From contig OZ218952.1 in assembly GCA_965112735.1 (NCBI GenBank), positions 2,170,001-2,234,000 on the forward strand: a stretch of DNA of 64,000 bases. Direction: 5' to 3'. This document shows positions 4,729 through 43,133 of this stretch, piece after piece. The stretch comes from Phaeosaccion multiseriatum (lineage: Eukaryota; Protista; Ochrophyta, other classes). The notes beneath the pieces were generated by a model. That model searched no databases. It saw nothing but the letters and a program-made list of their open reading frames with translations, and was not told where the DNA came from. The position numbers were made by a program, and so were the translations under genes. The stretch's first letter is position 1. Every line of letters starts with the position of its first letter.

Positions 4729-5698
4729 GACTATTCCACGAAAGTGTGTGAGCGCGGATGGGAGCAGCAGGAAGGAAGGGTGCGCGATGATGCGACCCAG
4801 GGAGAGGGAGGGGAGGTATGTCTGAGCTATGTGTGGGTGTGAAAGTAAGTGATCAACAATACATAGTATAGAGGGGGAATCTTGAGGTGCTGTTAGGCGG
4901 CATGGCGGGGGGTAGCAGAAACTCTGCTGCGAGACAGAACGGGGAGGAGGAGGAGGAGGAGGAGGAGAAGGACGAGGAGGAGGAGATGGAGGAGGAGCTT
5001 TACTACAATGCACAAACCAGCAGTACTGACGAGGTTGCGGAATATGCACAGCACAGACGATACGCATAATCATGGTAGCGAGCAAGTGCCGGTCTACCTC
5101 TGAACAGACCTTTCTCACTTACTTGCTCGTCAACCGCGCCGCCTCAGCTCCGACCCTCTTTTCCCTGTCTGCCTGCCACTCAGTGCGACAGTAAGCTGTT
5201 TGCGTGTCTCTTGATAGCGAGGCTCTCGATGAACCGACCCCACGTAGCCTCCCTGTTCAGGCCTGAGCAACCGCGGTCTCCTCCCTCTTCACGACGGCTG
5301 CCCCTCTTCTGCGCAAACGTGAAGCGCTGGCTACGGTAGTATGGCTCTCATCTCCGGTAAGGTTCCACCTTATTCTCTGCTCCTACACCTGCTGCTGTTC
5401 CTTTCCTCTGCTGCGCCGTGCGCTTGCTGCTCTGGAATGTTTGTCTCGGCCCTTGCCTAAGGTAACGGCCGCGACCCGAGGGGGTGTTTCCTTGACTTCA
5501 GCGAGTGTACTTGTACCCCAAAGAGCCCAAAGAGGGAAATAAAAGCTGCTGCTCTGCAGCTTTAATTTGAGGAGGTGATCCAGTGAGGGAGTGCTTCAGT
5601 ATGGCGGAGGCGGCTATAAGCATCGAGGTTCGATCTCTGTCCAAGGGGAGAGGGAGGTTTTATTTTTCTTCTCTTCCCCTTTCCTCCCTGCTCTCCAG

Positions 5699-6326
5699 GC
5701 AGAGCGACTGTGTTATGCCATCATAACTGGACCTCTCTCCCTACACCCACTCCCAACTCTTCCCCCACCTCTCCCCCCACCTCTGCCCCCACCTCTCCTC
5801 CCACCTCTCCCCCCACCTCTCCTCCCACCTCTCCCCCACCTCTCCCCTCGGCACTCCCCCCACCTCTCCCCTCCCCTCACCTCTCCTCCCACCTCTCCCC
5901 CCACCTCTCCTCCCGTCGCTATCCCCCCCCCAGCCACATCCACTTCGACCTCTCCGCCTGTGAGTAACCCCACGGAGGTGGACTGCTCTGCCTTAGGGTG
6001 GGCAGACAGCTGCGGCGTATACACCGACTCTTCCTTCGCGTGCTCGTGGACCGATGGCAGCTGCAGCACTGGCGGTGGCGGAGGCAGCGGCCCCGTCCCC
6101 ACTCCCTCCCCCGTGGCCATCGTCAACAGCTGCGAGGGAGTGGCAGCCTGCGGTGTGGGCGAGCAGACCTGCACCTTCGTCCCTGGCTGATGGCTGCCTG
6201 GACATGAGCGGCTGTGTGGCTGAGACCAGCTGTATGTACTGCGGCTTCGGTACCTACGATGCCTGCCCCACACCACCAGCCGACGACATGTTTGCCAATG
6301 CCACAGCCTGCGGCGTGGGTGGGTAG
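5699..6326 (+). pseudogene. Frameshifted Pro/Thr/Ser-rich (PTSP repeat) plus Cys-rich extracellular-type protein fragment
   Basis: Protein-like sequence is split over three frames: PTPNSSPTSPPTSAPTSPP (5710 ORF), ...SPPVSNPTEVDCSALGWADSC...CTFVPG* (5591 ORF) and DGCLDMSGCVAETSCMYCGFGTYDACP (6054 ORF). An acceptor-like ctccag ends at 5698. No clear start codon or signal peptide. Assembly indels are an alternative explanation. Confidence 0.5.
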
Positions 6327-7477: not shown

Positions 7478-10160
7478 CTACTCAAGCTCCTCCTGCACGC
7501 CTGGCGGGAGCCGAGGCCACAGCTTCTGCACCCGAGCATTCGACAGCCTCGGCAGCAAGTCCTTCAGCAAGACTGCGGGCAGCTGAGCCAGCAGTCCATC
7601 GACTTCGGCAGGAGGCAGCGGGCCCAGTAGCCTCCACACTGTTGCAGCAGACTGTGGCGACAACAGCTCCACCGCCCTGCCAGGAGAAAAAACAGTCATA
7701 AGTCGCTGCCCCTGGGGCACTGGAAGTTTCGGCAGCAAGTCCTTCAGCAAGACGGCAGGTAGTTGAGCTAGCAGTCCATCCGCTGTGGCATCAGGCAGCC
7801 CAGCCAAGACCCTGAGCACCTCCTCTGTAGGCAGGGAACACAGTAACTCCCGTACTGTCGCTCCAGGGAGCCGAGGCCACAGCTTCTGCACCCGAGGCTC
7901 TGGCAGGCTTGGCATCAGCCTCTTCAGCAAGACTGCAGGTAGCTGAGCCAGCAGTCCATCCCCTTTGGCAGGAGGCAGCGGGCCCAGTAGCGTCCACACC
8001 GTTGCAGCAGACTGTGGCAACAGCAGCTTCACCGCTCTGCCAGGAGACAAACCAGTAACAAGTCGCTGCCCCTGGGGCACCAACAGCCTCGGCAGCAAGT
8101 CCTTCAGCAAGGCTGCAGGTAGCTGAAGTAGTAGTACATCTGCTGTGGCATCAGGCAGCTCAGGCAAGACCTTCAGTACCTCCTGTGCCGACAGGGGGCG
8201 CAGTAAGTCCCGCAAAGTCGCTACTGGGAGCTTCCGCCACAGTTCCTGCACCCGAGCATTCGGCAGCCTCGGCAGCACGTCCTTCAGTGAGACTGCAGGT
8301 AGCTGAGCGAGCAGTCCATCTGCAGTGACATCAGGCAGCCGAGATAAGACGTGCAGTAGATTCTCTGCCGGCAGGGGGCACAGCAGCTCCCGTACAGTAG
8401 CCCAAGGGAGCCGAGGCCACAGCTCCTGAACCCGATGCTCTGGCAGGCCTTGCATGAGCTGCTTCAGCAAGTGTGCAGGTAGGTGAACCAGCAGATCGTC
8501 CACAGTGGTGGTAGACGTCAGGCAATCGAGCAGAGAATATACCTCCCCCACAGGCAGAGGCCCCAGTAGGCCTCTGAGAGTGGGAGGGGGCATCATTTGG
8601 AGAAGCCCCGCCATTCTGGGACAAGGCCATCTCAGCCGCAGCTCCCTCAACGTGGCCACAGGAAGCCCGACCAAAACCTCATCCACCCCAGGACTAGGCA
8701 GCCAACGCACAAGCGTCAACACTTTGTCAAGGCTTAGTGGAGACAGCAGCTCTGCCGCTCTGGCAGAAGTTATGCCAGCCACCAGCTGCTGCCCCGTGGA
8801 CTCAGGTAGCCTCGGCAGCAAGTCCTTCAGCAGGGCTGTAGGTAGTTGAATCATCAGCCTCATCGCACTAGAAGCAGGATGCATCCCAGTCACCATCCTC
8901 ACCGTCCTGACGACAGGCAGCTGGGGCAGCAGCTTCAACACCGTGCCATCAGACAACCGTGGCAGGAGCTCGAGCAGCCGTCTATCGGCCATCGGAGCCA
9001 GTACCTTCCTCACGGCGTCGGCCGACAGCCTGTCGAGCAGCCCATTCATCTCGCTCACCATGCCGCACTCCGTTTGGCCGAAGAAGTCCACTCCGCGGCG
9101 GAGCGGTCCCCACGCATCGATATCACCATTTCCCCCCATCTGAGCCCCAAAGGCACGTTGGAGAACCTCGTTGCTCTCGTCGAGTACCTTGCTGCGGCCT
9201 TCCAGGCTGTGCTTCATCTCTTGGACCTTTTCCTTGAGCTCACGCTGCTCAGTCAGCACTTTCTTACGGTTTAGCGTGTACTGTGCTGTTTGCTCTACTC
9301 GTAGGGTGATTGCAGCCAGTTCCGCCTCCTTGCCCCTCAACTCCGTAGTCCGCTGTCTCATGTCTTTCCTCACGGCCAAACGGTCCAGCAAGAGCCTGTT
9401 GGCGTCTTCGTAGCTCGACGCAAGCAGCCCCACGTGACTGGTGAGCCCCTCCTTCGCTTGTTGCTGCCTCAACCTCTCCAGGATCATCTTCTCCATCGCC
9501 TCGATGCGATACTTTGCCTGGAGCACGGACACCACCTCCGGCACCAAGTTGCCAGGCGGGACTCCCGTGTTCAAGGCCTTCCCTGCCGTGCTGCCGTCGT
9601 CGTTGGCAAGGCAGAGCTCCGCTAGGCGCAGGCCCTCAGCCCTAATCAAGTGCCTTGAGGGCGCTCCCGTGTCTAGCGTCGTCAGCCGCTCCAGATGGTG
9701 CACGGTCCTGAGGGCAACGCTTCTCCATCGCACGGAGGCCTCCTCTGCCCGCAAGAAGAGAGACAAGTCTTCCCCCACATGACAGGATGACGTCAGCAGT
9801 CTCAACAGGACGAAGGCGTCCGTGCAGCGCGAGTCAGCGGCAAAGAAGGCCCTCATGGGTAGAGTCTCCAGGGCCTCATTAGTCTCCGCTCGATCCCCGC
9901 CATTGTCTTCGTCTCTGCTGCTGCGGCGTGCTCCTTCCTCCTCATCTCGCTCCCTATGAAGGGCCTGGAGTATGTGCCGCGCGCTCGACGAAACGAAGCG
10001 ATGGACAAGGACTCTGCCCTCTGAGTCCCGCTGCAGACGCGCCGGTAGCAGCATGTAGCTCTCCAACACGATGTGGGAGAGGAGTCCGAAAGCGAAGGGC
10101 AAGAAGAAGGAGGAATCGCCCGCGGATACGCCCGATGCGGATGCCTCTGGTGTCTTCGTG

Positions 10161-10199
<39 letters not shown>

Positions 10200-12704
10200 G
10201 CATTCCTTGCCTTCTGCTTGTCCCTCTTCTTCTGGGTCTTGCTCTTTCTGGCCCGCTGCTGCTGTTGCGGCGGCGGCATCTGATTCGCCACCTCTACCGC
10301 AGGCGAGGTCCACCAGCCGTCCAAGAGAGAGCGCAGCTCATGGTACGCAGCGGCACACAAGAGCGGCTCGAGAGAGGCCAGCACCGCTCGGGCATGCTTC
10401 AGCACCACCTTCTGCGCCTCCTTCTCGTTGATCTCGCCGTCTTTCCTCTTCTGCTTACCCAGCGCCGAGGGAGAGGTTTTCCCGTCCTCCATCAAGCCTT
10501 GACCCCCATGCGGTCCAAAATGCGTCTCTGCCATGGCGAGGCGACACTGACGGAGGGAGTGGAGGAGCTCGCTGGTGCTCTTAGCCTTGCCGTCCTCTGC
10601 CGGTGAGCGAGCACAAGAAGCGCGAGTCGCACCCCTCTCCGCGCTGCCCTCCTCCTTCTTGTCCGAGTCAGAGGCAGCGGTGTTACCATTAGCTGTCCAG
10701 CCTGTAGCCACCACGGGGCCGAGCAACCTCTCCAGGCAGCGCCCTTGTCGCTCCTCAATAAACACCGTCGCCCCTCGTTCGTAGGCAGAAAGGCGAGAGT
10801 AGAAGCTCAGCTGGTCTTCCTCTACACGATTGGGCGGCGCAAACACCCACTTGCCACCCGACGCCCTCTTCCTCCGCTGCTGCTGCCTCTCCAGGAAAGA
10901 CAGCACGGCTCCTTGGTGCTCCGTGCTAGCCACCTGGCCCTGCAACACTCCAAAGCACGCCATCTCGAGCGCCTTCCGGCCGCGTTCTTCGTCCTTCTCG
11001 TAGAGGTTGAGACCAAGGTCCAGCCACGTGTTCCTCTGCAGGTCCGGCCCAAAGCGGTTGTGTGCCTGCGGCTTGTGCTCCTCCCTGTCCTCCTCCTCTG
11101 TAGAGAGCCGCAGCATGACGTCATAGAGGGCCGTGTACATGCCGGCTCCTGAGTAACAGTCGACCAAAAGATCCAGACGGTCGATGTTCTCGTACACGCA
11201 AGCCGCCTCGTCGTAGGCCCCCGCATTCTGCATGCGATAGGCCACTTTCCGAGCCTCTTCCGGCTCCTCCAGGCGCAGCCAAATGGCCGCAGCGTCCACG
11301 AGTAGCTGGGTTTTACTCGGCTCTCCTTCGTGCAGCTTGAGTTTGATCATGGCGCTCATCTCATCCACCCGACGTGTGTTGTGCGCGCTCTCGAAGGCCC
11401 CCTTGGCCTGCTCGAACAACCCACGAGAGACAAAGGTCTCTCCACGTGCGTTCCACTCTTCGGCGGAGCTGACTCGGTCGGCAATGGTCTCCTCCTCCGC
11501 AGTGGTCCACTGAATCAGGCCTTGGAACACCCTGGTCACAATCTCCCTCTCTGGCTTGTGTTGCTCCACGAAGAAGAGGCGCATGCGTGATCGAGTCACC
11601 GCCACATAGAGCTCCTTCAGCCAGGGGCACAGATCTGCGTGCTTCTTTGGGTCGAAGTCCGGCAATGCGTCACTCGTGTTGCCCTTGCCTGTGGTGATCT
11701 GCGTTTGCCTCTCAGCGCTCGTATTGACGAGATATCTCAGGAGCACTCGCATGCGGTTAGAGTGGCCCTCAAACGCCGTGGCGCACATGTTCACTGCGAG
11801 AGACGGGAGGGAAGGAAGGAAGGAAGAGATGGGGAAGGACGGGGAGACAGGGCCAATGCGCGAACGTTCCTATCAGCACATACAAGTGTAAAAGGGCAAG
11901 TGCGCTCATTGACTCTCCCTCAACCCCACCACCGGCACTACCCCGCGTGCCCTCTTCCTCTCCTCCTCCTGCCCCTTGTCTGCCAACTCACCCAAGACGC
12001 AGTCGTCAAACTCCAGTCCTTTGGCCTCGAGCACAGTCATGACCATGGCCCTCTTGCCGTGCTTGGAGAGGAGCGCCTCCACTTTGTCCCTCTCCGACCG
12101 ATTGCGAGTAAGGATGACCTGATCGGCTCCAAGAGTGGCCTTGTCGCCGAACACTGTCGAGCAGAGGGGGGGGGGGGGGAGGAAGGGGGGACGAAGGGTG
12201 AGATGAGGGCGCTGTAATTTGCATTGAGGGACCCACATACAAGTGCTTCCCCTATACATTCCATCAGCACGCATTGGTCCCCATGGCGCACACATGACAC
12301 AGCACTCGGCGCTCCTTACCTGGCGCGATGATTTCGCACTCCTTGAACATCTTGGGCAGAGGAGGGAGTGTGATTGCCGCTCCATCCGCTTCCGCTTCCT
12401 CTTCCCCTTTCCCTTCTTCTTGTCCAGTGCCGCTCTGGCGGCCCTCCGAGGAAGACGAGGGCGGCGAAGCAATAGCAACAGCAGAGGCGGCGGCGGCAGA
12501 GGAGGAGGAGGCAGGGCCATTCGCGGAGTGCTCGTCGTACAGGGCCTCGACCTCATCAGGGAAGAAGTCGTTGAGCACTTGGACAATGGCGTTGCTCAGC
12601 CGCAGCACCGGCTCCTGCGTGCGATAGTTCACTCTCAGGCGGAGCTCCACCGGCGCTTCGCAGGTGGCGGAGGAAGCATCCACGCCGTCAACACCGCTGG
12701 CGGC

Positions 12705-12749
<45 letters not shown>

Positions 12750-15700
12750 TCGATACATGAAGGCCTTGAGCTGACTGAAGCGGAAGCGACTGCCCGCCGT
12801 GATGGCCTGAGTCTGGTCCCCACAGGCCACGAATGTGGTGTGCTCGTCTCGCAGGCCGTCGAAGAGGCGCCACTGACAGGAGAGAAGGTCCTGCACCTCG
12901 TCCACGAAGATGGTGTCACAGAGAGAGAGCTTCGCCCCTGTCGGCAGGCGCTGGCTGAGGTTGGTCATGATGCACACGACATCGATGCCGTGCCGCTCTG
13001 CTCGCATGTCCTCATATCGCTCGAACAGCCTGTAGATCTGCATGCGCTCACTCGAGGAGGCCACGTCGTCGCCGAGCTTCCTGTACTCGTCCAGCGATAG
13101 ACGCCCCCCCGTGTTCTGCTTGATGACGGACATGAACTCGGTGAAGATGAAGTGGGCGGAGAAGTCTCTCTTGAGCTTGGAGTGGCCCGTCAGCGGCTCA
13201 AAATACAGCCTTTCAAAGCGCTCAAAGTCGATCACGTCCTCGTCTTGATATCGCCTTCTCCTGCTGCTGGGGCTCTCCTCCTCGTCGCCCTCTCTAACCC
13301 CCTCTGTCTGTGCCCCGGCTTCCACTGCTCCTGCTCCCGCGCCCACCCCCAGGCGCCTCAGCCTATCCTTAACGTCTCTGTCGTCCTCGCTGAGGTCTAC
13401 AAAGAGGCGTGCCTGTGGATCAAAGCGTATCGCCAATTGCTTGTCCAGGAGCTTCGCCAAGTCGAAGAAGGACACAAATCTTGTCCTCGTCTTTGCCACT
13501 CCAGACTGAGCGGTGCCATGCTCCGTCGTCTCTCCGTTAGTACCAGTGCGTATCGCCTCCTCCTCCTCCTCCTCCTCCTCCTCCTCCCCCTGCCGCCGCT
13601 GCCGCTTCTGTGGTTCGGCCTCAGTCAACGCCCCGGCTGGTTTAGTAGCAGCCTCGAAGGTGGCAACAAGTTTGGTAAACTCGTCATCCACAAGGCTGAC
13701 CAACCCGCGGCTCTGGCTCACAAACAGCTGGCGGGGGGGGGGCTGCTCGCTCAGGACGGCCTGCTGGTACGCCTCGAACAGTCTCTGGGCGAGCACGGAG
13801 GTCTTGCCCGTCCCTCCTCTGCCAATCACCACCACATTGCCGCTCTGCTCCACCGCCTTGCGCTGCTGCGCGTCCAGCATGTAGGGGATGTGGAAGGGCA
13901 CAACATGTCGCCTACCCCGTCTTGCGCTGCTGTCGCCGTCCTCATAACAGCTGTCGGTGTCGTCGTGGTCGTCCCTGCAGTGATTGACTAAAGCGCCGAG
14001 GATCGGGTCGTCAGAGATGTCAAACACCTTCCTCGACCCATCCGCAATGAGGGCCAGCAGTCGACGGGCCTGTAAGTCCTCCTTAAGCCCGATGAGTTTG
14101 AGTAGCTCGGCAGGGTTGGGGTGTGTCAGTCTTTTCCCGACACGCATCACACAAGTCCTGGCTCGCAAGTCTGCCTCCTCCTCCGCTCCAACTCCTGTGA
14201 GAAACTTGAGCCACACCTTGTTGATGCTCTCGTTGGACGGCACCAGGTCGAACGCGTATAGTACGTGCTTCGCGTTGTTCACGCCTATAGTGAATACCAC
14301 TAGCGGGGACTTGCCCATACCGCTTCCGCCGCCTCCTCCTCCCCCTCCTTGCCTTCTCTCTGCATCACCCCTTCGGTCCCCACTTAGGCGCGCCACGAAG
14401 AAGAGGTCCCCTGCGAAGACCCGGACTCGGCGTGCCGCATGTCTCTCCGCCGACACGACGTAGGGCTGCGTGATGTAGGTGGAAGGCCACTGGCCCGACC
14501 GCATAGCCTCAAAGGTCTGCAGAAAGTCAGTCCTGAGGCCGTTGGTCTTCCGTACCTTGCCTATGAAGGCCTCCGAGGCGGTGAGGTCCCAGGCATGACG
14601 GCTTGTGCTGGTGTCGATGGAGGCGAAAGCGCCCCTCCCGATAATGTCGGAGCGGCGCATATCGGGTGGGAGATTGGTCGTACTGTACGATAAGGACAAG
14701 TAGCCAGACTCCTTGGCCGTACTGTACGATAAGGACGAGTAGCCAGACTTCCTCGCCGCGAGTACAGCCTCCCTCGCACGGATCCTCACGCTCGCGCTCT
14801 GATGCAGTGAGTCGCATGCCTCCGAAACGAGTGTGTCGAATTGCTGCTCGTCCCATTGCCCGCCCCCCTCCCGGGTGTCGCAGAAGTGCGAGAAGCGACG
14901 CCACCATTTGGATGACGGCGCGTTGCGGCCAGCAGCAGCAGATGAATGAAATGCTTTCCTATCGCCGAAGACGATGAGATTTAGCTTGGCGCGTGTCAGG
15001 GTGACATTCACACGTCGTGCGTCGTTCACAAAGGCCGAGGAGCTGCCCACCGCTACCCGAGAGACGATGATGACTGTGGGGCAGGGGGGGGGGAGCACAG
15101 CAGAAGGAAGGTCAAGGAGGGGGTGGGGTGAGGAGGAGAGGAGGAGCAAAGGGCAAGTGGGGAGGGAACCTGCAGCAGGAAAGACAAGCCAAAGGGGCGT
15201 TCCGGAAGCATGGAGAAGGGTACTTTGGTACAGCTGGATGAATAGCCAAGGTGTGTTCCCGGCCAGTATCATAGCCCCGCGATGCCTGCGAGTGAGTCTC
15301 CGCTCCAACACACTCACCGTCTCGCTCCTGGCCTTGGAACCCATCCACCGAGTTCACGTCGACCTCCACACCGGCGCTGGCGAGAGAGCTCCGTAGCTTG
15401 TGAACCGCGCCTTCGAGGAGCTTCTTCTGGGCGGTATAGGGAGTGATGACACCCACTCGCAAAGCTCGCAAAGCCGCCTTCTGCTTCTTCTTCTTCTTCT
15501 TCTCCTGCTGCCACAGTCCCACACTTCGAGTCAGGGTGAGGAGGTGTGCGCACACGAGAGATGCCTCTTCGATGTTGGACTTGCTGCCGGAGCTGTCCAT
15601 CTCCAATTGCGAGCATGCGTGCTGCACGAACAAGAGGGGCGGGAAACGAGCATACCAGGCCGCCGCTTCCTCCGCGTATTGCTCCACGTTGCTTCCATCC

Positions 15701-17950
15701 GCAATTCTCCCACCATAAAAGTGCGCGGAAGAAAAGGCTGAGATGTGGGGGTGCATGCGGTACTGAGTGGAGAGCAGGTGGTAGTGGGGATGGCCCTGCC
15801 CCTGCAGACGCTCAAAGAGGCTGCGCTGATACCCCGCGTCGACGCACGCTTCGGAGAACACGGTGCCTGGCAGCTGCCGAGGATCGCCCACCAACACCAG
15901 CGTTCGCAGGCCCTCTCTGAGCAGACAAGTCGACTCGGCCTCGACGGCTTGGGCCGCCTCATCCACCACCACCACCCGGGGCGACAACGGCAGACTCTGC
16001 ACCCTCTTGGAGAGGCTCATGTTGAGCGTACAGAAGAGCACTCGGGCCCTGAGCAAGAACTCGTTCGCGAGCCGATTGTACAGGGCTCCGGTGTGCTTGT
16101 GCCCTCGGTCAAGGACCAGTAGCGGTGGCGGCTTTCCCTTTCTCACCTCGTCCACCTTGATGCTCAAGCTCGTGGCCTCCCCAATCACGCCCTCGAGGCC
16201 CCTCAACAGCCCTGCAAACACCTCCGCGCCCACCTCGACGCTCATTCCGTCGCCCTCGCCCTCCTGCTCCTGCCCATCCGCTGTCATGGCGTCACTCAGC
16301 AGCTTCTTCGCCACGTCCACGGATGCCGTGAGTTCACTCAGCGCGGTGGTGGAGTGGCGGCACCCGCTTTCTTCATAGATCTTGAACAGTGCAGGCAAGC
16401 GCCGGTGCATGGTAAAGACATTCCTGCAGCTGCTACTCTCCTCATTCAACACGCCGTCCTTGAGCTTCAAAGCCTCCAAGCGCAGCGTATGGACTGCCAG
16501 CAGGGCCCGTTTCACTCGGCTGTCGAGGTGGCAGGGCTCGAGGCACTCGAATTCGCCCTCCAGCAGCGGGGCCATGGTCTCTGGCCTGCAGATGACCACC
16601 ATGTCTGTGTCTGACACCACACTCGGGTCTCGCTGGAGCCACAGGGCCTTCGCCACCGCGAGCATGGCAATGTTTGTAGTTGTTGTGACCATGATGGCGG
16701 GTCCCCCCCCTCCCCCCTTCTGCTTCTCCTCCTCCTCCTCCTCATTGGTGAAGAGTAGGGTGTTGATGAGCCCAACCGTAGTGGTCGTCTTGCCCGTTCC
16801 AGGTGCTGAATATATATATACGGCATCAAGAGAAAGGATACAACAGCAGCAGCAGCAAAACATTGTGGTTAGCGCCAACGAGTGGCTGGTACCGGTGGGG
16901 GGGGGGGGGGGGGAGAGTGGAAGAAAGGCACAAACAGCTTGGCTTGTGCTCCCGCCGGCCCACTCACGTCCTTGGATGAGGCAGATGCCGCCGTTTCCGC
17001 CTCCCGTCGTGTCCATCCGCACCACCTCGGCCACCGCCTCGGCCTGCGGGGCATTAAGAGGTCTACCTCGCGTGTACCGGAGAGCCTTCTCCACCAACTT
17101 CTGAGCCCATCCCTCCTCCTGCCCGTCATCCTGTCCATATTGCGGGCCCCGTTCCTCCTCGAGGCCGAAGATATGCCTCGCTACGACGCTGTGCGAGAGC
17201 GACGGACGCAGTAGCATCGTGTCCTTTAGCGACCCAAGGAAACGGTCTGTAGACAAGCCATTGGAGAATACAGTCACCTTCAGCTGCTCGCCCGGGTTGG
17301 GCAGCTCCAGGCCCCAATATTGGCAGCAGAAACACTTAATAAGTGGCCCGTCCTCTTGGTGGAACTTGCATGCTCGAACAATGAACCAGCCACAGCACTC
17401 ACGAGGATCAGGCGCATCAGGCGAATGCCGCCGGTAGAGAGCTGGCGCCATACCTCTGCTGAGGAAGCCAATGTCGCCGGGAGAAAGCTCTTGCCCTACC
17501 TCTGCCGCGGTCAGTTTGAGGAAGCCGCTCGTCCCGTCGTCACCGCCTCGTGATGACAGCACGTGCATTGTCTTGACCTTGAGGCCAGTGCTGCCATCCT
17601 CTGAACCTCCCACCGCACACTGGGCATCACGAGCGAGAGTTGCCCGGAAGTTCTCCTGGTAGTCGTTGAGCACAGCAAGCAACAAACAAACAACACAAAC
17701 GAGGGGATAAGCTGGCTTGTCTCACTCTCGCTCATTGCGTCCAGCTAAAAGGGTGCCTGAGCCATTCCGCCTACGTTGCACGCACCTCCATGGGGCACAC
17801 GAAGACCTGCAGACTCCTCCATGATGCCGGCTGAGCGTTGGAGCTGATGTCTAGGCTTTCAAAGGATAGCGCCTCCCGGTTGTTGGCGAAAAGAACACCC
17901 CTCGGGAGATTCAGCACCGCATCTAAGGACCGGAAGGGCTGCTCAGCCAT
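7478..17950 (-). CDS. ~3190-aa multidomain protein: Upf1/Sen1/Dna2-like SF1B helicase + putative RelE/ParE-like domain + UvrD/TRANK1-like SF1 helicase + TPR-like helices + coiled coil + C-terminal 60-aa Leu/Pro repeats
   Basis: Exons 17950-17786, 17655-16968, 16805-15318, 15073-12320, 12153-11992 and 11793-7478 are all GT-AG and total 9573 nt = 3191 codons. Helicase 1 motifs: QGPPGTGKT (formed by splicing), VVVVDEAAQ, LVGDPRQLP, SLFERL, LSTQYRMHP, NSVDGFQGQERD, RRVNVTLTRAK. Helicase 2 motifs: VIGRGGTGKTS, IFVDEVQD, CGDQTQAI, LRVNYRT, TVLEAKGLEFD, LKELYVAVTRSR. TPR-like segment: SSAEEWNARGETFVSRGLFEQAKGAF. Confidence 0.9.
7480..9030 (-). repeat. Coding tandem repeat, 180-nt (60-aa) period, about 8 units, built from 12-aa LLxxLPxxxxxx sub-repeats
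   Basis: The anchor 'cttcagcaagactgcaggtagctgagc' and variants recur at 7561, 7741, 7921, 8101, 8281 and 8461, with more diverged units at ~8641 and ~8823. Confidence 0.9.
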
Positions 17951-18320: not shown

Positions 18321-21300
18321 CTAAATGGCATATCCGCCGCCCGCGAACCTCCGACTGGCCGCGGCGTGTGCCCTGACTTGCTGCGTGGCGGGGCCTCTGA
18401 GGGCCTTCTCCTCGTCCGCCATTTCCCGCATGAGCGAGTCCTTGCGCTTCTGCTCGTACAGCTTGCGCTTGGTGTCTTGCAGCTCCCTGACCAACCGCTC
18501 TGCTTCATACTTGAACTCGTTGACTTGCGCCTGGTACATGTTGAGCTCTGCGGCCATGGCCTTCATCTGCCGGGACTTCTCCTTCAGCGACGCCTGCGTG
18601 ATCGACCGACAGATGACGATAGAAGGAGGAGAGTAGAGGACAAAGGGCACGCGGTAGAGGCCACAGAGAGGGTAAGAGAGCAAACGGTACGGGCCACAGA
18701 GCAGGGGGTAGGGAGAGGCCAAAGAGCGCGAGGCAAAACATTGCAACACACGACGTAAGTGGCGCATACCAGTGGGTCGGGGTCTCACTTTGGAGAGCAA
18801 ACGACAACTCGATAAACTCTCGCTGTCCTCTCCGTCTCTCCCTCTCTCTCTCACTCACACACACTATACACACACACTATACACACACACCAACGCACCT
18901 GGTACACGCTGAGCTGCTCCGCCACCTCCGGTCCGGGCTGTCTCGCGAGAATGGCCTTGACCTCCTTGTAGAGGTTCTCCTTCTCCTCGAGCAACAGGTC
19001 CTTCTCCACCACCTCCTCCGTCTTTGCTATGAGCCTCTTTTGCAGGGTCTGTATCTTTTGGATCATCTCGTACGTGGTGGGGTCGGAGCCCTCGAGCTTG
19101 CGCCACCGGTGCACATTCATTGGGTTCTATGGGCAGTTGATGATGATAATGATGGTGATGGTTTCGGTGGTGATGAGGAGGGACGGGCGAGAGAGTGAAA
19201 GAGAAGGCAAGAGAGGAAAGGTGCAAAAGGGCTCAGTGCGAAGTGCTCAATAGATGGCAATAGATGGCGGTGCGGAGTGGCGACGGGGGTTGGGGCGTCC
19301 TCTGAGAGTAGACCTGAGTCTGAGGGGTGGAGAGCGAGAGCAGGAGAGCGGGACACGCAGGCTTCCCCCTCTCGACAACCCATCTGTTCTACACTACACC
19401 TTCCCTTGCTTTGCCTGCCTGCTTGATCGATTGCTGGCTTTCCCTGCTGGCTTGGCCTGCTTACTTCCCTGCTTCCTTCCTTCCTTGCCGACTTGCGTGC
19501 TGGCTCGCTTGCTTGCTTACCTCGAGCTCCTCGCTGAGTGCCTTGACCTTGGTCTTCTCTCGCAGCATGTCCCGCTGCAGCTGGAAGAGCTCCCTCCGCA
19601 TATCCTCCATTTGGTTGTTGGAGCCCCTCGAAATGTTCAAGTCACGCGCCAAGTCGCTCACCTGGGAGGTGTACAAAGGGGAGGGGGGAGAGGAGCGAGC
19701 GAGAGAGAGATAGAGAGGGGGAGAGAGAGAGAGATGGAGGTAGAGAGAGAGTAAGGAGGGAGGGGCGACGTGTGCTTGTCTCAGTCCACGATCATTGCCC
19801 ACTTACTATGCTCGCCTCGATAGATACACGGCTAGCACAATGGTACAGCTCTCATTCAACACAGCCCGAGTTTCTCTCCTCGCCCTGTCTTCGATCCCTC
19901 GCCGTCTCTCTCCCCCTATCCTTCTCCCTCTCCCTCTCCCTCTCCCTCTCCCTCTCCCTCTCCCTCTCTCTCTGCCCTGTCGGATACGCGCTCGTGAAGC
20001 ACTCCAGTTGCTTCTTACCTTGAGCTTGAGTGTGCGGATGTCTTGCAAGCGGTGCGCGTACGAGGCCTCCCCCTTCTTGAGGGTGCTCTGTTGGATCTTG
20101 AGTTTCTCGTACAGGAGAGCTGCGGGAGGGGCGAGAGGGAGGAGCACCAGCAGCAGAAATCGCAACAGCAGCAGCAATAGCATCAGCACGGGAAGAGGAG
20201 AAGGAGGGGCCCACGGGACGACTGGCGACGACGTATGAGCATGTAGGGTAGGGTAGGGTAGGGTAGGGTATGTATGACGACGGACGCACGCAATCAAACC
20301 CGGAGGATGAATGACCCTATAGGCAGTATGCCTGTGAACATGTAAGCCTGTATACCCGTCTGCGTACATGCCCTTACACCGGCCTCGTGAAGGGAAAGAC
20401 GACACACAACTCTACAGGGCCACAGCCTCTGTGGATAGGATGGGGTTCTTCATTCAATGGGAGGGGAAGGGGAGGCAACTCATCTCTTACCAAGCTCGTC
20501 GTTACGTCGAATCAGCTGTGTGCCCAAGATGTCCCTCTCATTGATCACCTTGGGGAGGAGGAGCGAGAGAGCACGCACGCACACACGTACACAGAGAGAA
20601 AGAGAGAGCGTTAGTGCGGAATGCCGCTGATGCGCACATACACACAAGAGGCCTCCGGAGGCCTTCCTACCCTACCTGATCGTACTCCTTCCTCTGCTTG
20701 AGGGCCTCGTCGTCCATGGTGCGGATCATGTTGGCGAGGCGGCGCACCTCAGCGTCCTAAGAGAGGCATATGGGGAGGGAGGGAGGGAGGGAGGGAGGGA
20801 GGGGTGGAGGGAGGGAGGGAGGGAGGGAGGGAGGGAGGGAGGGAGGGAGGGAGGGAGGGAGGGAGGGAGGGAGGGAGGGAGTGAGGGAGGGAGGGAGGGA
20901 GGGAGGGAGGGAGGGAGGGAGGGAGGGAGGGAGGGAGGGAGGGAGGGAGGGAGGGAGGGAGGGAGGGAGGGAGGGAGAGGGTGATTGGCTGTTTGCTTGA
21001 TGGATTCACAAACTCTTTGTTGGTTTGGTTGCTTTCGCTCATATTTGTGGATGGATGATAGGGGTTATGATCGATGGAATGGGCGATTGGCCCATTGCGT
21101 GCGTCAAGGGGAGGGGGGGCTCAGTCAAAGTCGAGCTGCGCAGCGTGTGTGCGTGCGTAACAAAAAGAGAGGGAGGGGGGACGAACCGCAGAACCGAGCA
21201 TGCACGAGCCCTTTTCGACTCAAGAGGCCCCAACAGACGGACGAAGTTGAGCCAAGAGGGTGCTGCAGACAAGAACAAAGAGTTCACACACCTGCTTGTG

Positions 21301-35600: not shown

Positions 35601-38600
35601 GGGCACACAATTGAAGGCCGAGGCGTGGTCGATCCCCTGGACCTGTTCTCTCGCACGTATGCATACGTACGTACGTACGTACTTACCCTTTGTCTTGTCG
35701 CGCCTCTTCATTTGCCACACCTGTTGATTGATTGTTTGATTTGTTCATCGTGGGGGCCGCAAAAGGCGGGGGTCGGGAGGGAATGGAGGGGAGGGGTTGC
35801 CTGAGTCTGTCACTTCCTCTCAATACGCTCGTAGGTAAGAGAGGCCATGTTCCGTGGAACTAGGGAAGAAGAAAAAAGAGGCCATAGTTCCGTAGCAGTC
35901 TGGGAAGAAGAAAAAAACGCCCGTTTCCCCTCCTCACACTTCCACACTCACCTTGACGTAGCCAATGGGTATCTGGAACCCAAAGAAGCCCGCCACTGAG
36001 AAGAGAAGCCTCGGCACCAGCGGGGAGGCCACAGACAGGGCCATAAAGCCTCCGTTGAGGAACAAGCTGCACATGAGGGCGGCACTCAAACTGTATTGGA
36101 TGGCCTCGATCCTTCCAAATGCCTGCTCGGATTCCAACACGCGCACTCGGAGCTTGAGATCCCCCCTCTCGAGTCTTTCTGTAACGTCGTCAATGTGCGC
36201 CACTCGTCTTGGAGACTTGACCACAGACGCAAGGTCCTGGGGTCGGAGGCCTGCCTTCCGCTGCAGGGATTTGAAGAACGTCTTGTAAACGCTACCATCC
36301 TTCACGTCGAGAAGCTTCTTCAGGTAGGGCTGTGTGTGATGATGAGAGGGGAGGGAAAGGGAGGGAAGGAGGGAGGGAGGGAGGGAGGGAGGGAGGGAGG
36401 GGAGGGAAGGGGAGAGGGGCAGGAGGGAGGGGGGACGGGAGGGGACGGGGAGATGGAGAGAGTGAGGAAGGAGAGAGGGGGGAAGGGAGGGATGAAAGGG
36501 GCTTCGAAGAGCGCGCACGTACACACACGTACACACATACGCAAGCACACACAAGCACACAAGCACATACACTCACACTCACACTCACACTCACACGCAC
36601 ACGCACACTCACACGCACACTCTCTCTCTCACACACACACACACACGCACACGCACACTCAAACGCACACTCTCTCTCTCACACACACACGCACACACAA
36701 CTCTTGTGTGACGCAAGACACGTACGTTGGCGATGCGAGTGAGATCGTACTCGGAGTCCAGGCCCTTGCCGATGCCGTCCAGGGTTGTGAACGCGCGAAA
36801 CTGGGGGGGGGGGAGGGGGAGACGAAGAGGAAGACGGAGAGAGGGAGGGAGAGAAAGGAGAGAGAGGAAGGAGAGAGAGACGGAGAGGAAGGGGGAGGAA
36901 GGAGAGAGAGGACCAGGCAAAGGCGTCAGCATCAGCCTTCCCGCCTTTCCACCAGCCAAGCACTGTCGCTTGAAGCTGGCTGTGCTAACCAAACCAATCA
37001 ACCAATTACCCAACCAACCAACCACCTAACCAATCAATCAATTACCCAACCAACCAACCACCTAACCAATCAAAGAAAGAACCAACCAACCAACCAACCA
37101 ACCACCTAACCAATCAATCAATTACCCAACCAACCAACCACCTAACCTATCAATCAATTACCCAACCAACCAACCACCTAAACAGTCAACCAATTACCCA
37201 ATTAACCACCTAACCAATCAATCAATTACCCAACCAACCAACCACCTAACCAATCAATGAAAGAACCAACCAACCAACCAACCAACCAACCAACCACCTA
37301 AACAGTCAACCAATTACCCAACCAACCACCTAACCAATCAATCAATTACCCAACCAACCAACCGACCAACCAACTAGCCAACCGCTCAATCATGGGGATC
37401 CCGGCTTACCACAAAGGTGAAGGATGGAGGGAACTGTGGTGGGAGATAAAGGGGGGTGGGGGGGCAAACGAAAACAGCGAACGAAGTGGAGGTGAGGAGG
37501 AGGTAGACAATGAGTCGAGGGGGGGGGGGGGGGGAGAAGGACTGAGTGAGGGGCGTACACGAAGGAGAGCAAAGGGCTGAGTGACGAGCGTCCGGAGAAG
37601 AGAGGACAACAGGGGGCAGGCAGAGAAGGAATGGAGGAAGGAAGGAAGGAAGGAAGGAAGGCAGTGGAAGGCAAGCAAATACCGAACAAATCGACACATT
37701 ATCGATACTCTGCTTACCTTGATGGGAATGTCTGACTTGGCGGTGAATAAGTCCTGCCCGATCTTGGCTCGCTCCGACCTCCTCAGCATCTTCTCCTCCT
37801 CCTCGTCCATCTGGTTGATCCACTTGCCGCCTTCGCATCACACAGAGAGAGAGAGATGAGGGGTACGATAGCGGGCATGCCGTTACAGAAGTGAGTGAGT
37901 GAGTGAGTGAGTGAGTGAGTGAGTGAGTGAGTGAGTGAGTGAGAAAGTGAACCAATCGGCAGCACCATCGCACCCCACCCCCACTCCCGCTACATTCACC
38001 CCGCCCCACCCAACCCCACCCCACTTTACAACCCACTCCACCCCACCCCATCCCGGTCCCCAAGTGACCCATGGCCCACCCTATGTCCTGACACCACCCA
38101 CCTGACTGCAACGTGCTCTGGAAGGTATCCAGATAGAACCTCGCCACCCTCTCCACCGTCATACGATCCGAGCCCTGCCGAATAATGTCCATGTCTTCCA
38201 TGGCGTCCACCACCTCCTTGGGGTCGTTCTCGTAGATGCCGAAGATCAAGTCGACAAAGTTCCTCTTGAGCTCGGGGGACAGCTCGTCCTGCAGGGGGGA
38301 GGGGAGGGGAGGGGAGGGGGGTGCTCCTGCTTGAGTTCGAGGGTTTCTGCTTCACTTCAAGCTCCCCTGCGATAGAAGGCCTCTCCTCGCCTACTTGGAA
38401 CCCCCTCCCGGCTCTGCACTTGGTCTGGTCTGGTTGGTACACCAACGGCCCCCCCTTGGGCCCTCCCTCCCCCTCACTCACTCACTCACTCACTCACTCA
38501 CGCACTCCTTCCTTTCCTGTCGACTCACTGCCCTTTCCCTCCTTCCCTTCCCTCCCTCCCTCCCTCTCTCCTTCCCTTCCCTTTCCTTTCCTCTACTCAC

Positions 38601-41600
38601 CATCATGCCAAAGTCGTAGAAGATAAGGCGTTGGTTGTCGCCCTGCACGTCGCAAGCCAAGTTTCCGGGCTGGCGTGGGGCCGATGGAAAGATCAAGATG
38701 AAAGGAGTAGCAGGGGCGGGCGGGCGGGTGGAGAGGTGAGGGGGGGGGGTGATATGCAGGTGGGTTGGCGCCGTTGACGGTGCATTCATTTCGGGAGTAT
38801 AAACTGAACAACCAACATGGAAGGGAGAGCCATTTGTGGGGCGCTGCTGTTTGTGGGTTCTTGTCATGCATCGATTGCCATGTCATCCACAACCCCACCC
38901 AACGTACATGAGCTGTAGTGCAATACGTCGAGTGTCATCATCATCCGTCAACACGAGGAACACGAGGCGCGTGTGCGTGTGCGTGCACCGAGCAAGAGTG
39001 CGGGAAGGGGAGCACGTAAGAAACACGTAGAAGGGGGGTTGAAAGTAAGAGGGGGGGTTGAATGTAAAAAAAGCCCCATCTCCTCCTCTGTTCCCTTGTC
39101 TATGTTTGGCCTCCCTCCTCCTCCACCTCCACCTCCACCTCCTCCTCCCCCTCCTGCTCTTCCTCCCGGCATCCTTCGCCGTACAACCAACTTACGATCG
39201 CAGTGAAAGAAGCCGTTCTCAATGAGCTGTCACAGATGGTCACACACGAGGAAGAACAACACAACACACACCACAGAACAGAGGGGAGTAGGGAGGGGAG
39301 CACAAGGGCAGGCACGCATAAGCTTAGCTGTCAAAGGTGAGTGAGCGCATGAGCACAACGATCGAGCAAACATGTTGAGGCTAGCCTCCTGTGCCTGCCT
39401 GTCTGTCTGACTGGCTGAATGACTGACAATTGACTGACGGTCTGACTGACTGACGGACAGACAGACTGACAGACTGACTGACTGACTGACGGAAAGACTG
39501 ACTGACTGAGACTTGGGATGTCCGCTGGTGCCCACGAAGGCGTGACGTGACGCGGCATGAGGACTCCCCTCTTCTCTCTCTCTCTTTCTCCACCCACCCA
39601 CCCCCCCCCACACACACACGCACACACGCACGCACCTGCACCAAGTAGCACTCCGCGATGCGCGTGGCCATCTTCTTTCTGTCAATGCCCGCCTCGTCAA
39701 TCTTCTCGTAGTCGCTAATCTTGATGCCCGGTACATACTCCATGCACAGAATCTTGGCTGTCAAGGACCAGAGGGACAGGCACGAGCACAGCGGAGAGGA
39801 GAGGAGTGAGCGGGGCGGAGACGGAGAGGGCAGTGAATGAGGACAGTCACGGACGGAAAGGGGGTAAAGGCGGACAAGTGGACAAGTGGAGAGCGGCCAA
39901 GTGTAGAGAGGGGCAGGATGGTGGACAGGAGCGTTGCTGCTGAGTTGAGCGGGAGGGTGACAGTCTGGGCCTAGCAAAGAAGGAATGCACACGCAGACAC
40001 GCTACCGCCAGGCCCCTGCGCATAGAGCCATACCCACCCCATTGCGCCGCATCGCTGCCCTCTGCGAGCACACACACGCACCCATACGCCTCTACACGCA
40101 CACGTTCGCCATCCCTCGACCCCGCTTACGTACATGAGGAGCGATCCCATCTGATCTCCGGCACTTTGATCCAATCGCAGTTTTCGAAGCTCTTGGCGAA
40201 CCTCGCCGCGTTCCTGCCCTCCCCTCGGTAGTCCACCTAAGGCAACACAACACAGTAACACGCACAGCACGGCACACGCCACACACACAGCATGTGCACA
40301 ACGCCCCACACGTAACAAGCGAGAGAGACGCAAGAGAGCAAAAGGAATGGGTCAACGTCAACAACAGAAAACACAACACACCACTCGTCCGAGAGAGAGA
40401 AGGAGAGAGGAAGGGAGAGAGAGATGCACACCCAGCACACCAAGTCCCCACTGTCCGTCCGTCCTGCCGTCCGTCCGGGTGGGGCTTCACGGGAGAGTAA
40501 GTAAGCCCCACAAGCCACGCCCGCGCACGCTTCTTGTCGCGCAGCAACCTGAGCTCCGCTTTCGTCCCTCCCACCCACCCCGGTGCCTGCCTCGCCCTTC
40601 AGTGTCCCGTTCCCGTCCCCTCTTCTGTGCCTTTGACCCCTACAAGACGTCCAAAAACATTCAACGAAAGGCCGCTTGCACCGCTGCCGCACCTCCTCGT
40701 ATAGCACTCTCTTGTTCTCCTTGAGGATGCTGGTCCAGTCCCGTGAGGTGCCATCTATCTTGGGGTCGAACATGTCTGCGAGCTTGGCAAACACCGCCAT
40801 GCTCTTGAGATCCACCTCGAAGAGGTCCTTCAAGCCGGGCCGCTGCACCAAAGAGCATAAATACATACATACACACACATACGTACACACATGTACATGC
40901 ATACACACACAGAGAGAGAGACAGAGTGTGTGTGCGCGTGAGAGAGGCAAGGGAGAGAGACAAGAGGGACAGAGAGGGAGAGGAGCATACCCGGACTCCT
41001 TCCACGTTAAGCACGTCGGAGTGTGCGGTCAGCTCGCTTCATCTTGTCGTGCCCACGGAACGGCTCCCAAGCTACGAGATGGCATTGCTGATCCATCATG
41101 AGCCCTCCTCCCCCCCCCTACTCCCCCCCCTAATACTCCTCCTCCTCCCCTCCTCCTTCTCGTCCTCCTCCTCCTCCTCCTCCTCCTCCTCCTCCTCCTC
41201 CTTACTCTGCTCACGACCGACCGACCCTTCGACCGACCTGTACTTTGACGGCATACGTCTTGCCGTCCAGCGTGGCAAGGTGCACCTGCCCCAGAGAAGC
41301 GGCTGCCAGTGGTGTCTCATCAAATGTGTCAAACAGCTCCGAAACAGGGGCGCCCAGCTCCACCTTGATGACCGCCTTGGCTCGCCTGACAAGACACAGC
41401 ACACACGGCAGCAGCGGTAGAGGCAGCAGCAAGTAGCAGCAGTCGAGGTAGCGGTGAGCAGGAGCAGGCACTACATGTGTAGCCCGCAAAGGCGGAGTCC
41501 GTCCTCTTTCCTTCCCTGACTTCAAAGCCCCTTGACTCCTTCCTTTGCCAACCCCCCCCCCCCCCCCACCCCCTCTGCTGACTTACTTTCCCCCAAAGCC

Positions 41601-43133
41601 CTTGACATTGTCCTGCAGCTCGCTCAGTTCCTCAATGTACTCCTTGCTGAGCAAATCGATGCGCGTGGACAGTAGCTGGCCCAGCTTAATGAAGGTGGGG
41701 CCCAGCTTGAGCAGTGCTTTGCACAGATAACGGCCCAGTTTGCGCTTCTCCAGGCTGAGCTTGGCAGGGTCGCGGCTCACGAGACGCTGCTTCGCGAGCA
41801 TGAACACGGCGCGAAAGAGAAAGAACCACACCTGGAAAGTGCGCACCACCGCCTTGCCTCGAAGGCCCCACCGCCGCCGGAAACGAGCAAAGGTCCCCTT
41901 GGACTCTCTAGCCTCTCGGCTCTTCTCGATGGAGGCCATCTCTTTGGCCTCCTCCATGTCCTCGTCACCCTCGCCATCGTCGTCCTTCTCCTCCTTCCCC
42001 TTGTTCTCGTGCAGTACAAGCGCCTTCTGCTGTGTACCTGGTGAATGTGGGCTCGCTTTGCCCTGTTGTGACGATGGCCCCTTCACTTCCTTTCCTCCTT
42101 CCATCCCTGTTACCCGCCTGCTATCTAATTTTGTGTCTAACGCTGTTGCTGCAGCGGCAGAAGACGACAAATAGAGACATACGGTTGGGGAGGGGTGGGA
42201 GGGGGGGGGAGGGGTGCGCTTAGTTAGTACTAATTGAGCCTCAGTGGTGCGAGCGGAGGGGAGTCCACTCAAGACAACATGCCAGGGCAAGGCCAAGCGC
42301 GTGTCGTGTCGCAAAGCCACATCTACACCCGCTGTCTCGGCACCAACACCCATCATGTACACACGCACAAACACGCACTTCCGCCTCCTCCGTCCTTTGA
42401 CTCAAGGCTGGCGTCACAAGAGTGATGCTTCGCACACGAGATCAGGCTACTCTGTGTTGCGTCAGTCACCCTACTCACATGTGCTGTGCTCGGAGGGGAA
42501 ACCCCCGTTTGGCGGGCTAGGAACCACGAGCTGCGGCTGTTGCTTCCCCTTCCCCCCGTGCTGTGGCGCCAGGTGGTGAAGGTGCTGAAACTCTGCCTTG
42601 CTCACTTTGATGGGTGCCTGCTTCTCTGTTGGCGTGACTGTCGCTTCCCCTCGCCCAGCAAGCTTCGCCGTAGAAAACAGAGTAGACAGGATGCGCCTGC
42701 GTCGAGGAGATGCTGCTGTTGCCTCCTCTGTTGTTGTTGTAGATTTCCTTCCCCTCGACAGAGCCCCAAGGATTGACCATGGAGAGCTCCGCAGCGACGG
42801 AGATAAGGATGGGGAGGAAGTCAAGGAGGCGGACGAGAACCACATGGAAGAGAGGGCATCTGCAGTAGCAGCCCTCCGGCCGCTCCGGTTGCCCCTGGTG
42901 CTGGTGGTCGTCCTGGCCGATGATGGGGTAGCCCGATAGGGCATTCTCCGCTGTTGCAAAGGTGATAATGTCAGCTTCAGCCCCGTGCTGAAGCGCGCCA
43001 AGCAGGAGATTAAGAGCAGCAATACTGCGCTCAGCCCCGCTCTGCTGCTGCCCGCCCTGTTGTTCTGCGGCCTCCCCCTCGAACTGCTGACGATACTACT
43101 GCTGCCCCCACTCGCTGACTTTTCACACATCAT
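35321..43133 (-). CDS. ABC1/UbiB atypical kinase (plastid ABC1K7/ABC1K8-like), many exons including micro-exons
   Basis: Motifs: [44 protein letters not shown]|RPGL, EE|[46 protein letters not shown]|[31 protein letters not shown]. The last exons 35720-35687 and 35331-35321 give [14 protein letters not shown]. The N-terminus has a hydrophobic presequence; the start codon is uncertain. Confidence 0.92.
36987..37385. repeat. (AACC)n-based compound minisatellite with ~36-nt higher-order unit, in an ABC1K intron
   Basis: The unit 'aaccaatcaatcaattacccaaccaaccaaccacct' recurs with variants. Confidence 0.9.

Follow-up and report, generated by a model that had tools for sequence, protein, structure and literature searches.

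Based on sequence and predicted structure, we conclude that the gene at 7478..17950 of the window (64,000 nucleotides of Phaeosaccion multiseriatum contig OZ218952.1) encodes a lineage-specific member, with two helicases, of the TRANK1-like RelE-UvrD-TPR family, which is pan-eukaryotic. The predicted protein consists, in this order, of a Sen1-like helicase, a RelE-fold domain, a UvrD-like helicase, a TPR region, a helical and low-complexity region, a coiled coil and an MgtE-N-like solenoid. By comparison with its relatives, the core from the Sen1-like helicase to the TPR region is not new. The C-terminal repeat tail, which the first-pass annotation had called unfamiliar, is indeed absent from all fetched relatives.

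The single six-exon gene proposed earlier was borne out, as both frame and splice sites check out on the minus strand, on which all features below are located. Translation of the spliced model yields a coding length of 9573 nt, corresponding to an open frame of 3190 aa and one terminal stop. The five predicted introns (130–244 nt) carry GT..AG throughout, and each alternative frame of exons 3, 4 and 6 contains 9–58 stops, compared to none in the coding frame. Introns 2–5 interrupt conserved domains (the Walker A motif of helicase 1, AAA_12 and, twice, UvrD_C); therefore, splicing is required for whole motifs. Exon 1 (17786..17950, 55 aa), the start codon of which is predicted, is the least certain exon; its end and the beginning of exon 2 are together similar to the N-terminal part of a relative from Blyttiomyces. 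Exon 2 (16968..17655; 27% identity to P0003 1–225, E 1e-6) covers the N-terminal part of helicase 1 with the Q motif and the first half of Walker A, and exon 3 (15318..16805) contributes motifs I–V of a Sen1/Upf1-type SF1B helicase (AAA_11, AAA_12). Motif VI of helicase 1, the RelE-like domain and the UvrD-like motifs Q–IV are encoded in one frame by exon 4 (12320..15073), followed by the UvrD motif V region in exon 5 (11992..12153). Exon 6 (7478..11793) comprises 1438 unbroken codons with UvrD motif VI, TPR, linker, coil, repeat array and stop. Since exon 4 is unbroken from motif VI of helicase 1 to the UvrD motifs, the two helicases are fused, and an explanation as two separate genes is ruled out.

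Three DNA runs of one sample, the only one in which the locus was seen, span 11740–17739 without any substitution or splice joint; a 1-nt deletion in the G run at 14863 occurs in a single run and not in the other two. The gene is present in one copy within the window, and its genomic neighbors are CFAP58 (370 bp away), CWC25 and a sugar transporter. A bipartite-looking leader was observed on a gene neighboring the helicase gene. Contamination was excluded on the basis of the host-type introns, a GC3 resembling that of the neighbors, and the nearby CFAP58 gene.

Pfam matches were obtained for AAA_11, AAA_12 and UvrD-helicase. The earlier statement that all catalytic motifs are intact holds for both SF1 helicase motif sets, which are complete, but not for the RelE-like domain, in which an Arg and a His are replaced. 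Helicase 1 is of the proposed Upf1-like type, with motifs Q and I–VI of the AAA_11/AAA_12 kind. It is closest to Sen1 (E 9e-29), followed by Upf1 (1e-23), with ZNFX1 at only 5e-9. No MOV10 chain was found among the helicase 1 matches and no zinc finger in Pfam; the suggested analogy to ZNFX1 and MOV10 is accordingly a loose one. SF1B helicases move 5′–3′ on RNA or RNA:DNA hybrids. The UvrD-like SF1 helicase (11585..13907, exons 4–6; Pfam and motifs) holds the helical insert and the motif variants of its family, and the insert is common to bacterial relatives. It probably lacks a full 2B domain, because motifs IV and V are separated by only about 140 aa.

Between the two motors, structure comparison confirmed the fold of the RelE-like domain (14160..14600), which bears a Gly-rich insertion. 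The top 25 structural matches all have the RelE/ParE fold, the best with a Z of 8.6 and an rmsd of 2.2 over 84 residues. The putative catalytic positions were assigned via alignment to YoeB and to bacterial relatives. Of these three residues, the beta2 Arg is kept, whereas the beta3 Arg and the C-terminal His, retained in bacterial and basidiomycete relatives, are replaced in the alga and throughout its clade, with no invariant polar substitute. As two of three residues are missing, RNase activity of the algal domain is doubtful, and the label of a putative nuclease was not upheld.

Directly after motif VI, a TPR-like alpha-solenoid (10922..11479) is conserved in the family, and the helices noted there are thus supported through relatives. 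For the stretch separating the TPR from the coil, a homologue search returned plant matches below threshold and nothing else. The probable coiled coil of about 85 aa (9152..9406) is plausible from its heptad bias. The tail (7481..9055) is the long repeat array described before, made up of about 43 twelve-residue Leu/Pro helices with periods of 12, 60 and 120 aa. Its predicted fold is an MgtE-N/FliG-type superhelix (Pfam MgtE_N, E 2.9e-30; predicted structure with pLDDT 91; Z 12.4 against MgtE; TM about 0.7). A magnesium transporter of the MgtE type is ruled out, since the CBS pair and the membrane domain are missing in Pfam. Neither word search, PDB sequence search nor profiles run against 300 fetched proteins retrieved a tail homologue, and comparison with Atlas features gave a low score only. 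The tail was built by duplication. A still-expanding array is ruled out because the youngest units are already at dS about 0.3. The last two 120-aa units are approximately 20% diverged in DNA (best pair approx. 80% identity), and their dN/dS is about 0.67 (bootstrap 0.41–1.13). Changes are seen at 11 of the 12 repeat positions and no hypervariable position stands out. Diversifying selection, as would befit the "variable repeat sensor" of the first-pass annotation, is not apparent.

Homologues were searched exon by exon using the spliced model, so that relatives detectable only at full length may be missed. The UvrD helical insert, the preceding RelE fold, the TPR after motif VI and the tree placement all fit the TRANK1-like core suggested before; in a quick tree, the alga falls inside the eukaryotic TRANK1-like clade among UvrD-type proteins (98 SH-aLRT). 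Fusions of AAA_11/AAA_12 and UvrD do occur elsewhere: among the fetched proteins, 26 of chytrid, plant or amoeba origin contain both helicases. The RelE-UvrD-TPR part is present in relatives from basidiomycetes and from animals (TRANK1-type). The family has a patchy distribution among plants, fungi, amoebae and animals, and its members have exchanged termini (PhyH, ankyrin, Sen1-like, MgtE-N-like). A tandem copy exists in Blyttiomyces and several clusters in Rhizoctonia solani. The nearest relatives are Blyttiomyces KAJ3330548.1, Phlyctochytrium bullatum KAJ3118095.1, proteins of Siphonaria and Rhizoclosmatium, and the SARC_07870 locus of Sphaeroforma arctica. They share the domain order through the TPR, are colinear with exons 2–6 at approximately 30–44% helicase identity, form one clade with the alga in both helicase trees and miss the same RelE residues, but lack the coiled coil and the MgtE-N-like solenoid tail and share no intron position. 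Plant proteins bearing DUF6469 (Selaginella EFJ34295.1, Hibiscus, Adiantum) and amoebozoan proteins (Pelomyxa, Mastigella) have the same double-helicase layout, RelE-like linker and TPR; they differ from the alga in forming separate clades and in their C-termini.

In the quick tree, on which this placement rests, the eukaryotic clade has as its sister group (92 SH-aLRT) a bacterial RelE-like, UvrD-like and ankyrin family with at least 4677 matches at E 1e-20, found in Campylobacterota, Bacteroidota, Lentisphaerota and Fusobacteriota. Like the algal protein, its members have a RelE-like domain, here N-terminal (profile probability 89%, E 2.4e-6), the same helical insert in the helicase and the same first helix after motif VI. 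Unlike it, they are about 900 aa long, with a single helicase and an ankyrin tail, and their Arg-Arg-His residues are 98–99% conserved among the 120 closest members, where the alga keeps one of three. In one of five bacterial neighborhoods, the relative lies immediately upstream of a Zorya-like operon; three of the five are housekeeping. No PADLOC or NCBIfam model matched beyond generic helicase domains; likewise, Gabija, Mokosh, Nhi and Hhe gave no full-length model match and only partial, generic helicase matches. Bacterial RelE-SF1 helicase fusions were reportedly described by Anantharaman and Aravind in 2003. Our literature searches found nothing relevant on RelE-helicase fusions and no link between the bacterial and eukaryotic families.

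Concerning the origin of the gene, trees place both helicases with those of chytrid fungi and of Sphaeroforma (support 100/99 and 100/95; 100/99 in a further tree), and the AU p value is 0.012 against opisthokont sequences together excluding the alga and one unidentified metagenome sequence. The nesting among opisthokonts is thus supported, with stramenopile sampling uncontrolled and two close sequences unidentified. A conserved single-copy orthologue across heterokonts, named earlier as the sign of a housekeeping gene, was not found: no identified stramenopile protein lies in the clade. Together, this suggests either gene transfer or wide loss. Most likely, the donor would have been an early-diverging fungus or one of its relatives, or else the gene would be the survivor of a widely lost ancient paralogue, and it would have gained host-type introns and the tail after arrival or survival. 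Inheritance of the introns from a fungus is ruled out, as no position is shared and the nearest is one codon off. The viral contigs searched gave two weak, generic UvrD matches and no sign of viral origin. Chytrid fungi include parasites of algae.

As to function, our best explanation is an ATP-driven nucleic-acid surveillance protein of the conflict or defence type, in the form of a TRANK1-like double-helicase variant, for which we see an even chance. A role in defence itself is plausible to the same degree, on circumstantial evidence at the level of the family: the patchy spread, the exchanged termini, the tandem copy and clusters, and the Zorya-like neighbor are traits resembling those of conflict systems. 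The TPR and tail solenoids might form a scaffold, or an arm for ligand binding, by which the UvrD-like ATPase is gated. In bacterial and basidiomycete forms, such gating would release an active RelE-type RNase onto mRNA or ribosomes; in the alga, chytrids and plants, the RelE domain would probably only bind RNA, ribosomes or domains of the protein itself, and the added Sen1-like motor would strip or unwind the target RNA. Interferon induces human TRANK1 (PMC6880163 Table 1; PMC8278099), which was included in an siRNA screen of interferon genes against VSV, without being a confirmed hit (PMC6880163). The literature searched contains no paper that mentions TRANK1 together with UvrD or RelE, nor one in which it is meaningfully linked to phage.

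Less probable, though the strongest competitor of the surveillance reading, is a housekeeping role in RNA metabolism, in which the Sen1-like/UvrD-like pair resolves R-loops or remodels stalled RNP or ribosome complexes and the dead RelE domain serves as an RNA or ribosome adaptor. The proximity of helicase 1 to Sen1, Upf1 and IGHMBP2, the lost RelE residues, the mild purifying selection on the repeats and the ordinary gene neighbors agree with it. However, the clade lacks an identified stramenopile orthologue, and core genes do not typically show such a patchy distribution, such long branches and such variable termini. The single-chain immune receptor-effector of the first-pass annotation, combining an active RelE nuclease with a fast-evolving repeat sensor, appears improbable. 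The RelE fold was confirmed with one Arg kept, the tail is unique and duplication-built, and BECR-fold RNases can use alternative active-site residues (PMC3710099); nevertheless, the clade-wide replacement of Arg and His and, in the repeats, a dN/dS of about 0.67, youngest units already about 20% diverged and changes at nearly all positions argue against it. Slightly weaker still is the reading that the gene is dispensable, came by horizontal acquisition and evolves under relaxed selection, or that the tail or exon 1 lies outside the main transcript. Numerous insertions of low complexity (poly-S, -E, -G, -Q) might indicate this, as might the absence of the locus from the contigs of a run that bears the same species label but stems from another sample. 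Against it speak an open 9.6-kb frame with all helicase motifs intact, five clean introns, an exon 6 without a break between motif VI and the last repeat, and a neighbor-like GC3.

Returning to the surveillance reading, a broader version of it is speculative and rather unlikely: TRANK1-like proteins may be a bacteria-derived, so far unrecognised family of innate immunity, single chains in which a UvrD-like ATPase and a repeat sensor control a RelE RNase; its bacterial and basidiomycete members would still be armed, and its human member is induced by interferon. The alga would have taken a double-helicase version from chytrid fungi and added an MgtE-N-type recognition arm. Taken alone, the algal gene adds one member with an unusual tail to a family that is widespread but unstudied. 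Its wider value lies in the family as a whole: the RelE-fold domain and the large bacterial sister family provide a concrete, testable hypothesis for TRANK1-type proteins, and the bacterial proteins of about 900 aa are accessible to standard phage assays. Human TRANK1 is a bipolar-disorder risk gene. Further, the chytrid affinity of both helicases makes this 9-kb gene a candidate for fungus-to-alga transfer.

Compared to known systems, the algal protein has the SF1B motifs in common with ZNFX1, MOV10, Upf1 and Sen1, but has no zinc fingers, CH domain or RING; among these helicases, Sen1 is nearest to helicase 1 and ZNFX1 is distant. The linker domain shares its fold with the toxins RelE, YoeB, YafQ and HigB and with the CARF-RelE effector Cami1 (Z 6.4–8.6); unlike these, it is located inside a giant protein, has no antitoxin and has its key residues replaced. 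NLR-type variable-repeat sensors with high internal conservation show near-identical repeats with few diversifying surface sites, which is not the pattern of the algal tail. With the intracellular N domain of MgtE and the armadillo-like superhelix of FliG, the tail shares the 12-residue helical repeat and the right-handed superhelix; in contrast to MgtE, its approximately 43 repeats are near-neutral (9% D/E, 11% K/R) and no CBS or transporter part is attached. Animal TRANK1/LBA1 was compared via a protein of the snail Lymnaea stagnalis, called TRANK1 by inference from its TPR, ankyrin and UvrD domains. The algal protein is not an orthologue of animal TRANK1, as it has no ankyrin match in Pfam and belongs to a separate subclade. 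The snail protein falls with it in one eukaryotic clade (98 support) and shares the core of RelE-like domain, UvrD-like helicase and TPR, but carries N-terminal TPR and ankyrin where the alga has the Sen1-like helicase, and lacks the solenoid tail.

The helicase gene was rebuilt on the minus strand from six exons (17950-17786, 17655-16968, 16805-15318, 15073-12320, 12153-11992 and 11793-7478), which give 3190 codons and a single terminal stop, in agreement with the first-pass annotation. All five introns are of the GT..AG type and 130-244 nt long. Since introns 2-5 interrupt conserved domains (intron 2 the Walker A motif of helicase 1, intron 3 AAA_12, introns 4 and 5 the UvrD C-terminal part), the gene model is fixed by homology; splicing and the start codon are both predicted from the sequence. 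Within exon 4, a single frame runs through the end of helicase 1 and into most of helicase 2, and no stop interrupts exon 6 between UvrD motif VI and the final repeat; two separate genes are therefore ruled out. We conclude that the gene is real. Three DNA runs, all of one sample, matched positions 11740-17739. One of the three lacks a single base of the G run at 14863, which lies between helicase 1 and the RelE-like domain. This deletion is absent from the other two and probably reflects a homopolymer error; the sequencing run concerned also carries an insertion in an intronic G run. Sequencing run X5, with the same species label but from another sample and study, has zero contigs across 11740-17739 and only repeat matches of ≤27 nt, which could be a matter of presence/absence, of a different strain or species behind the label, or of limited assembly size.

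Upstream lies the flagellar gene CFAP58 (18321-20405, minus strand), whose stop is separated from the helicase start codon by approximately 370 bp. The interval that separates the helicase gene from a kinase-like gene contains, at 5591-6326 (plus strand), Pro/Ser/Thr-rich, Cys-containing reading frames that had no match in Pfam and may encode a secreted or wall protein. A many-exon ABC1-type kinase-like gene was read from the sequence at 37386-43295 (minus strand); by eye, its 5′ frame appears to encode a transit peptide preceded by a signal peptide, a leader consistent with a complex-plastid alga.

Homology searches of the protein were run exon by exon. Helicase 1, in which all AAA_11/AAA_12 motifs are present, most resembles Sen1 (E 9e-29), followed by Upf1 and IGHMBP2; ZNFX1, to which it had been likened, is far weaker. 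In helicase 2, which is UvrD-like, motifs Q and I-VI are likewise intact, so that both SF1 motif sets are complete, as initially read. Only about 140 residues separate its motif IV from motif V, and a full 2B domain is therefore probably missing. The region C-terminal of motif VI is indeed TPR-like, judging from relatives, and a probable coiled coil separates it from the repeat array.

The linker between the helicases is, on the predicted model (AlphaFold, pLDDT 76), a RelE-fold domain, as previously suggested. A linker profile of 111 sequences matched only RelE-family toxins in PDB (4/4 rows, weak E-values), and all top 25 structural matches of the model were RelE/ParE-fold chains (best Z 8.6, rmsd 2.2 over 84 residues); Foldseek gave the same ranking, but with E >0.001. 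The domain is present throughout the entire family. Three RNase-residue positions, assigned by alignment to YoeB, are Arg-Arg-His in 98–99% of the 120 closest bacterial relatives and Lys-Arg-His in 25–26 of 26 basidiomycete-type proteins, whereas the algal domain retains the first only. Because two of three putative catalytic residues are gone and the chytrid-type clade to which the alga belongs, like plants, has no conserved polar residue at the second and third positions, the nuclease activity initially supposed is doubtful for the algal protein. These residues are missing from most copies that have the Sen1-like helicase, an apparent trend with exceptions. The basidiomycete-type proteins (P0013, P0016 and about 24 similar), without this helicase and with the near-invariant triad, are the eukaryotic members most likely to have an active RNase domain.

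The tail consists of about 43 twelve-residue Leu/Pro repeats with higher orders of 60 and 120 residues. It matched MgtE_N in Pfam (E 2.9e-30), and the predicted 120-residue unit (pLDDT 91, one helix per repeat) was structurally closest to MgtE cytoplasmic domains (Z 9.6–12.4; next unrelated row 6.7). The youngest 120-aa units share about 80% DNA identity (dS ~0.3), with a dN/dS of 0.67 (bootstrap 0.41–1.13) and replacements at 11 of 12 repeat positions. Thus, there is no sign of a hypervariable binding face, and the variable sensor of the first-pass annotation gives way to an older array under mild constraint. None of the fetched relatives carries the array; the combination is as unfamiliar as first stated, and the tail is what is novel in a protein of otherwise known, though unstudied, kind.

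A full HMMER scan with exon 4 returned 823 representatives, the best from chytrid fungi, Sphaeroforma and an unidentified metagenome eukaryote, and further ones from plants, basidiomycetes, Rozella, Mucoromycota, amoebozoans and a snail. Since both helicases occur together in 26 fetched proteins and, in split gene models, at a Sphaeroforma locus, the core architecture is old and widespread. The UvrD tree placed the alga with Rozella, a fungal-looking contig, Sphaeroforma and Chytridiales (support 100/99, inner 100/95), and a constraint that united these opisthokont rows to the exclusion of the alga and of the unidentified metagenome row was rejected (AU p 0.012). The Sen1-like domain independently grouped with the same chytrids (100/99). 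No identified stramenopile row fell within the algal clade of the UvrD tree, for which stramenopile sampling was uncontrolled. The algal gene shares no intron position with three relatives, its GC3 is similar to that of neighbouring genes, and these are ordinary host genes. An old transfer from an early fungus with subsequent intron gain fits; wide loss of an ancient paralogue fits as well. The nearest relatives of the algal gene include two paralogues of an unidentified eukaryote from one ENA metagenome sample (L001, L046, L047). Beside the Blyttiomyces gene, the UvrD-TPR part occurs a second time in a tandem copy that is not annotated (L049:14783-17157), and an Entophlyctis relative (P0008, residues 1–224) has an N-terminal PhyH-type dioxygenase domain in place of the Sen1-like helicase.

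In place are two intact ATPase motors, the RelE fold and two solenoid regions. The UvrD-like ATPase would be gated by the solenoids through their binding of a partner or ligand; where relatives are armed, such gating would set an RNase free. The algal RelE domain would more likely be autoinhibitory or serve as an RNA/ribosome adaptor, and target RNA would be acted on by the Sen1-like motor. For a defence or surveillance protein with a disarmed RelE domain, we consider the chances about even. The defence context is favoured because of the toxin fold, patchy spread, swapped termini, tandem and multiple copies, and interferon induction of human TRANK1 (PMC6880163; PMC8278099). On the other hand, TRANK1 was not among the confirmed hits of an antiviral screen (PMC6880163), which counts against defence; a housekeeping role in RNA metabolism is a less likely alternative. 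An armed immune receptor-effector, as first proposed, is unlikely: alternative active sites are known for this fold family (PMC3710099), but the loss of two putative RNase residues and the widely spread tail replacements speak against it. Relaxed selection on the gene, or a mis-joined model, seems improbable as well.

Scanning prokaryotic genomes yielded proteins of about 900–1400 aa with an N-terminal RelE-like domain, a UvrD-like helicase sharing a helical insert with the eukaryotic family, and ankyrin repeats (e.g., L002:182-2971, L006:5275-8001, L008:5212-8661, L013:5065-9207 and L034:5878-9021; proteins P0181-P0300). The family comprises at least 4677 matches at E 1e-20. Its N-terminal profile matched the eukaryotic one (probability 89%, E 2.4e-6), and a quick tree made it sister to the eukaryotic clade relative to other UvrD-type proteins (92 SH-aLRT). 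Defence-system models (PADLOC, NCBIfam) gave no specific match to the family. Of five neighbourhoods, three contain housekeeping genes, one has adjoining TPR-CHAT and ATPase genes, and one has a Zorya-like operon (ZorA-like, OmpA, EH signature, SNF2 with Mrr) immediately downstream of the family member and SbcCD and AddAB-like genes upstream (L041:10001-22706). The bacterial protein is a candidate stand-alone defence or toxin protein.

Bacterial RelE-helicase fusions were reportedly noted in 2003, and our literature search found no paper connecting TRANK1 with RelE or UvrD. A eukaryotic metagenome contig (L032:3684-13838, GC 68%) encodes an ankyrin, RelE-like, UvrD and TPR-like protein with the same layout as the animal type. 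Besides the chytrid affinity, the main value of these results is the family-level link between TRANK1-type proteins, the RelE fold and a testable bacterial family.
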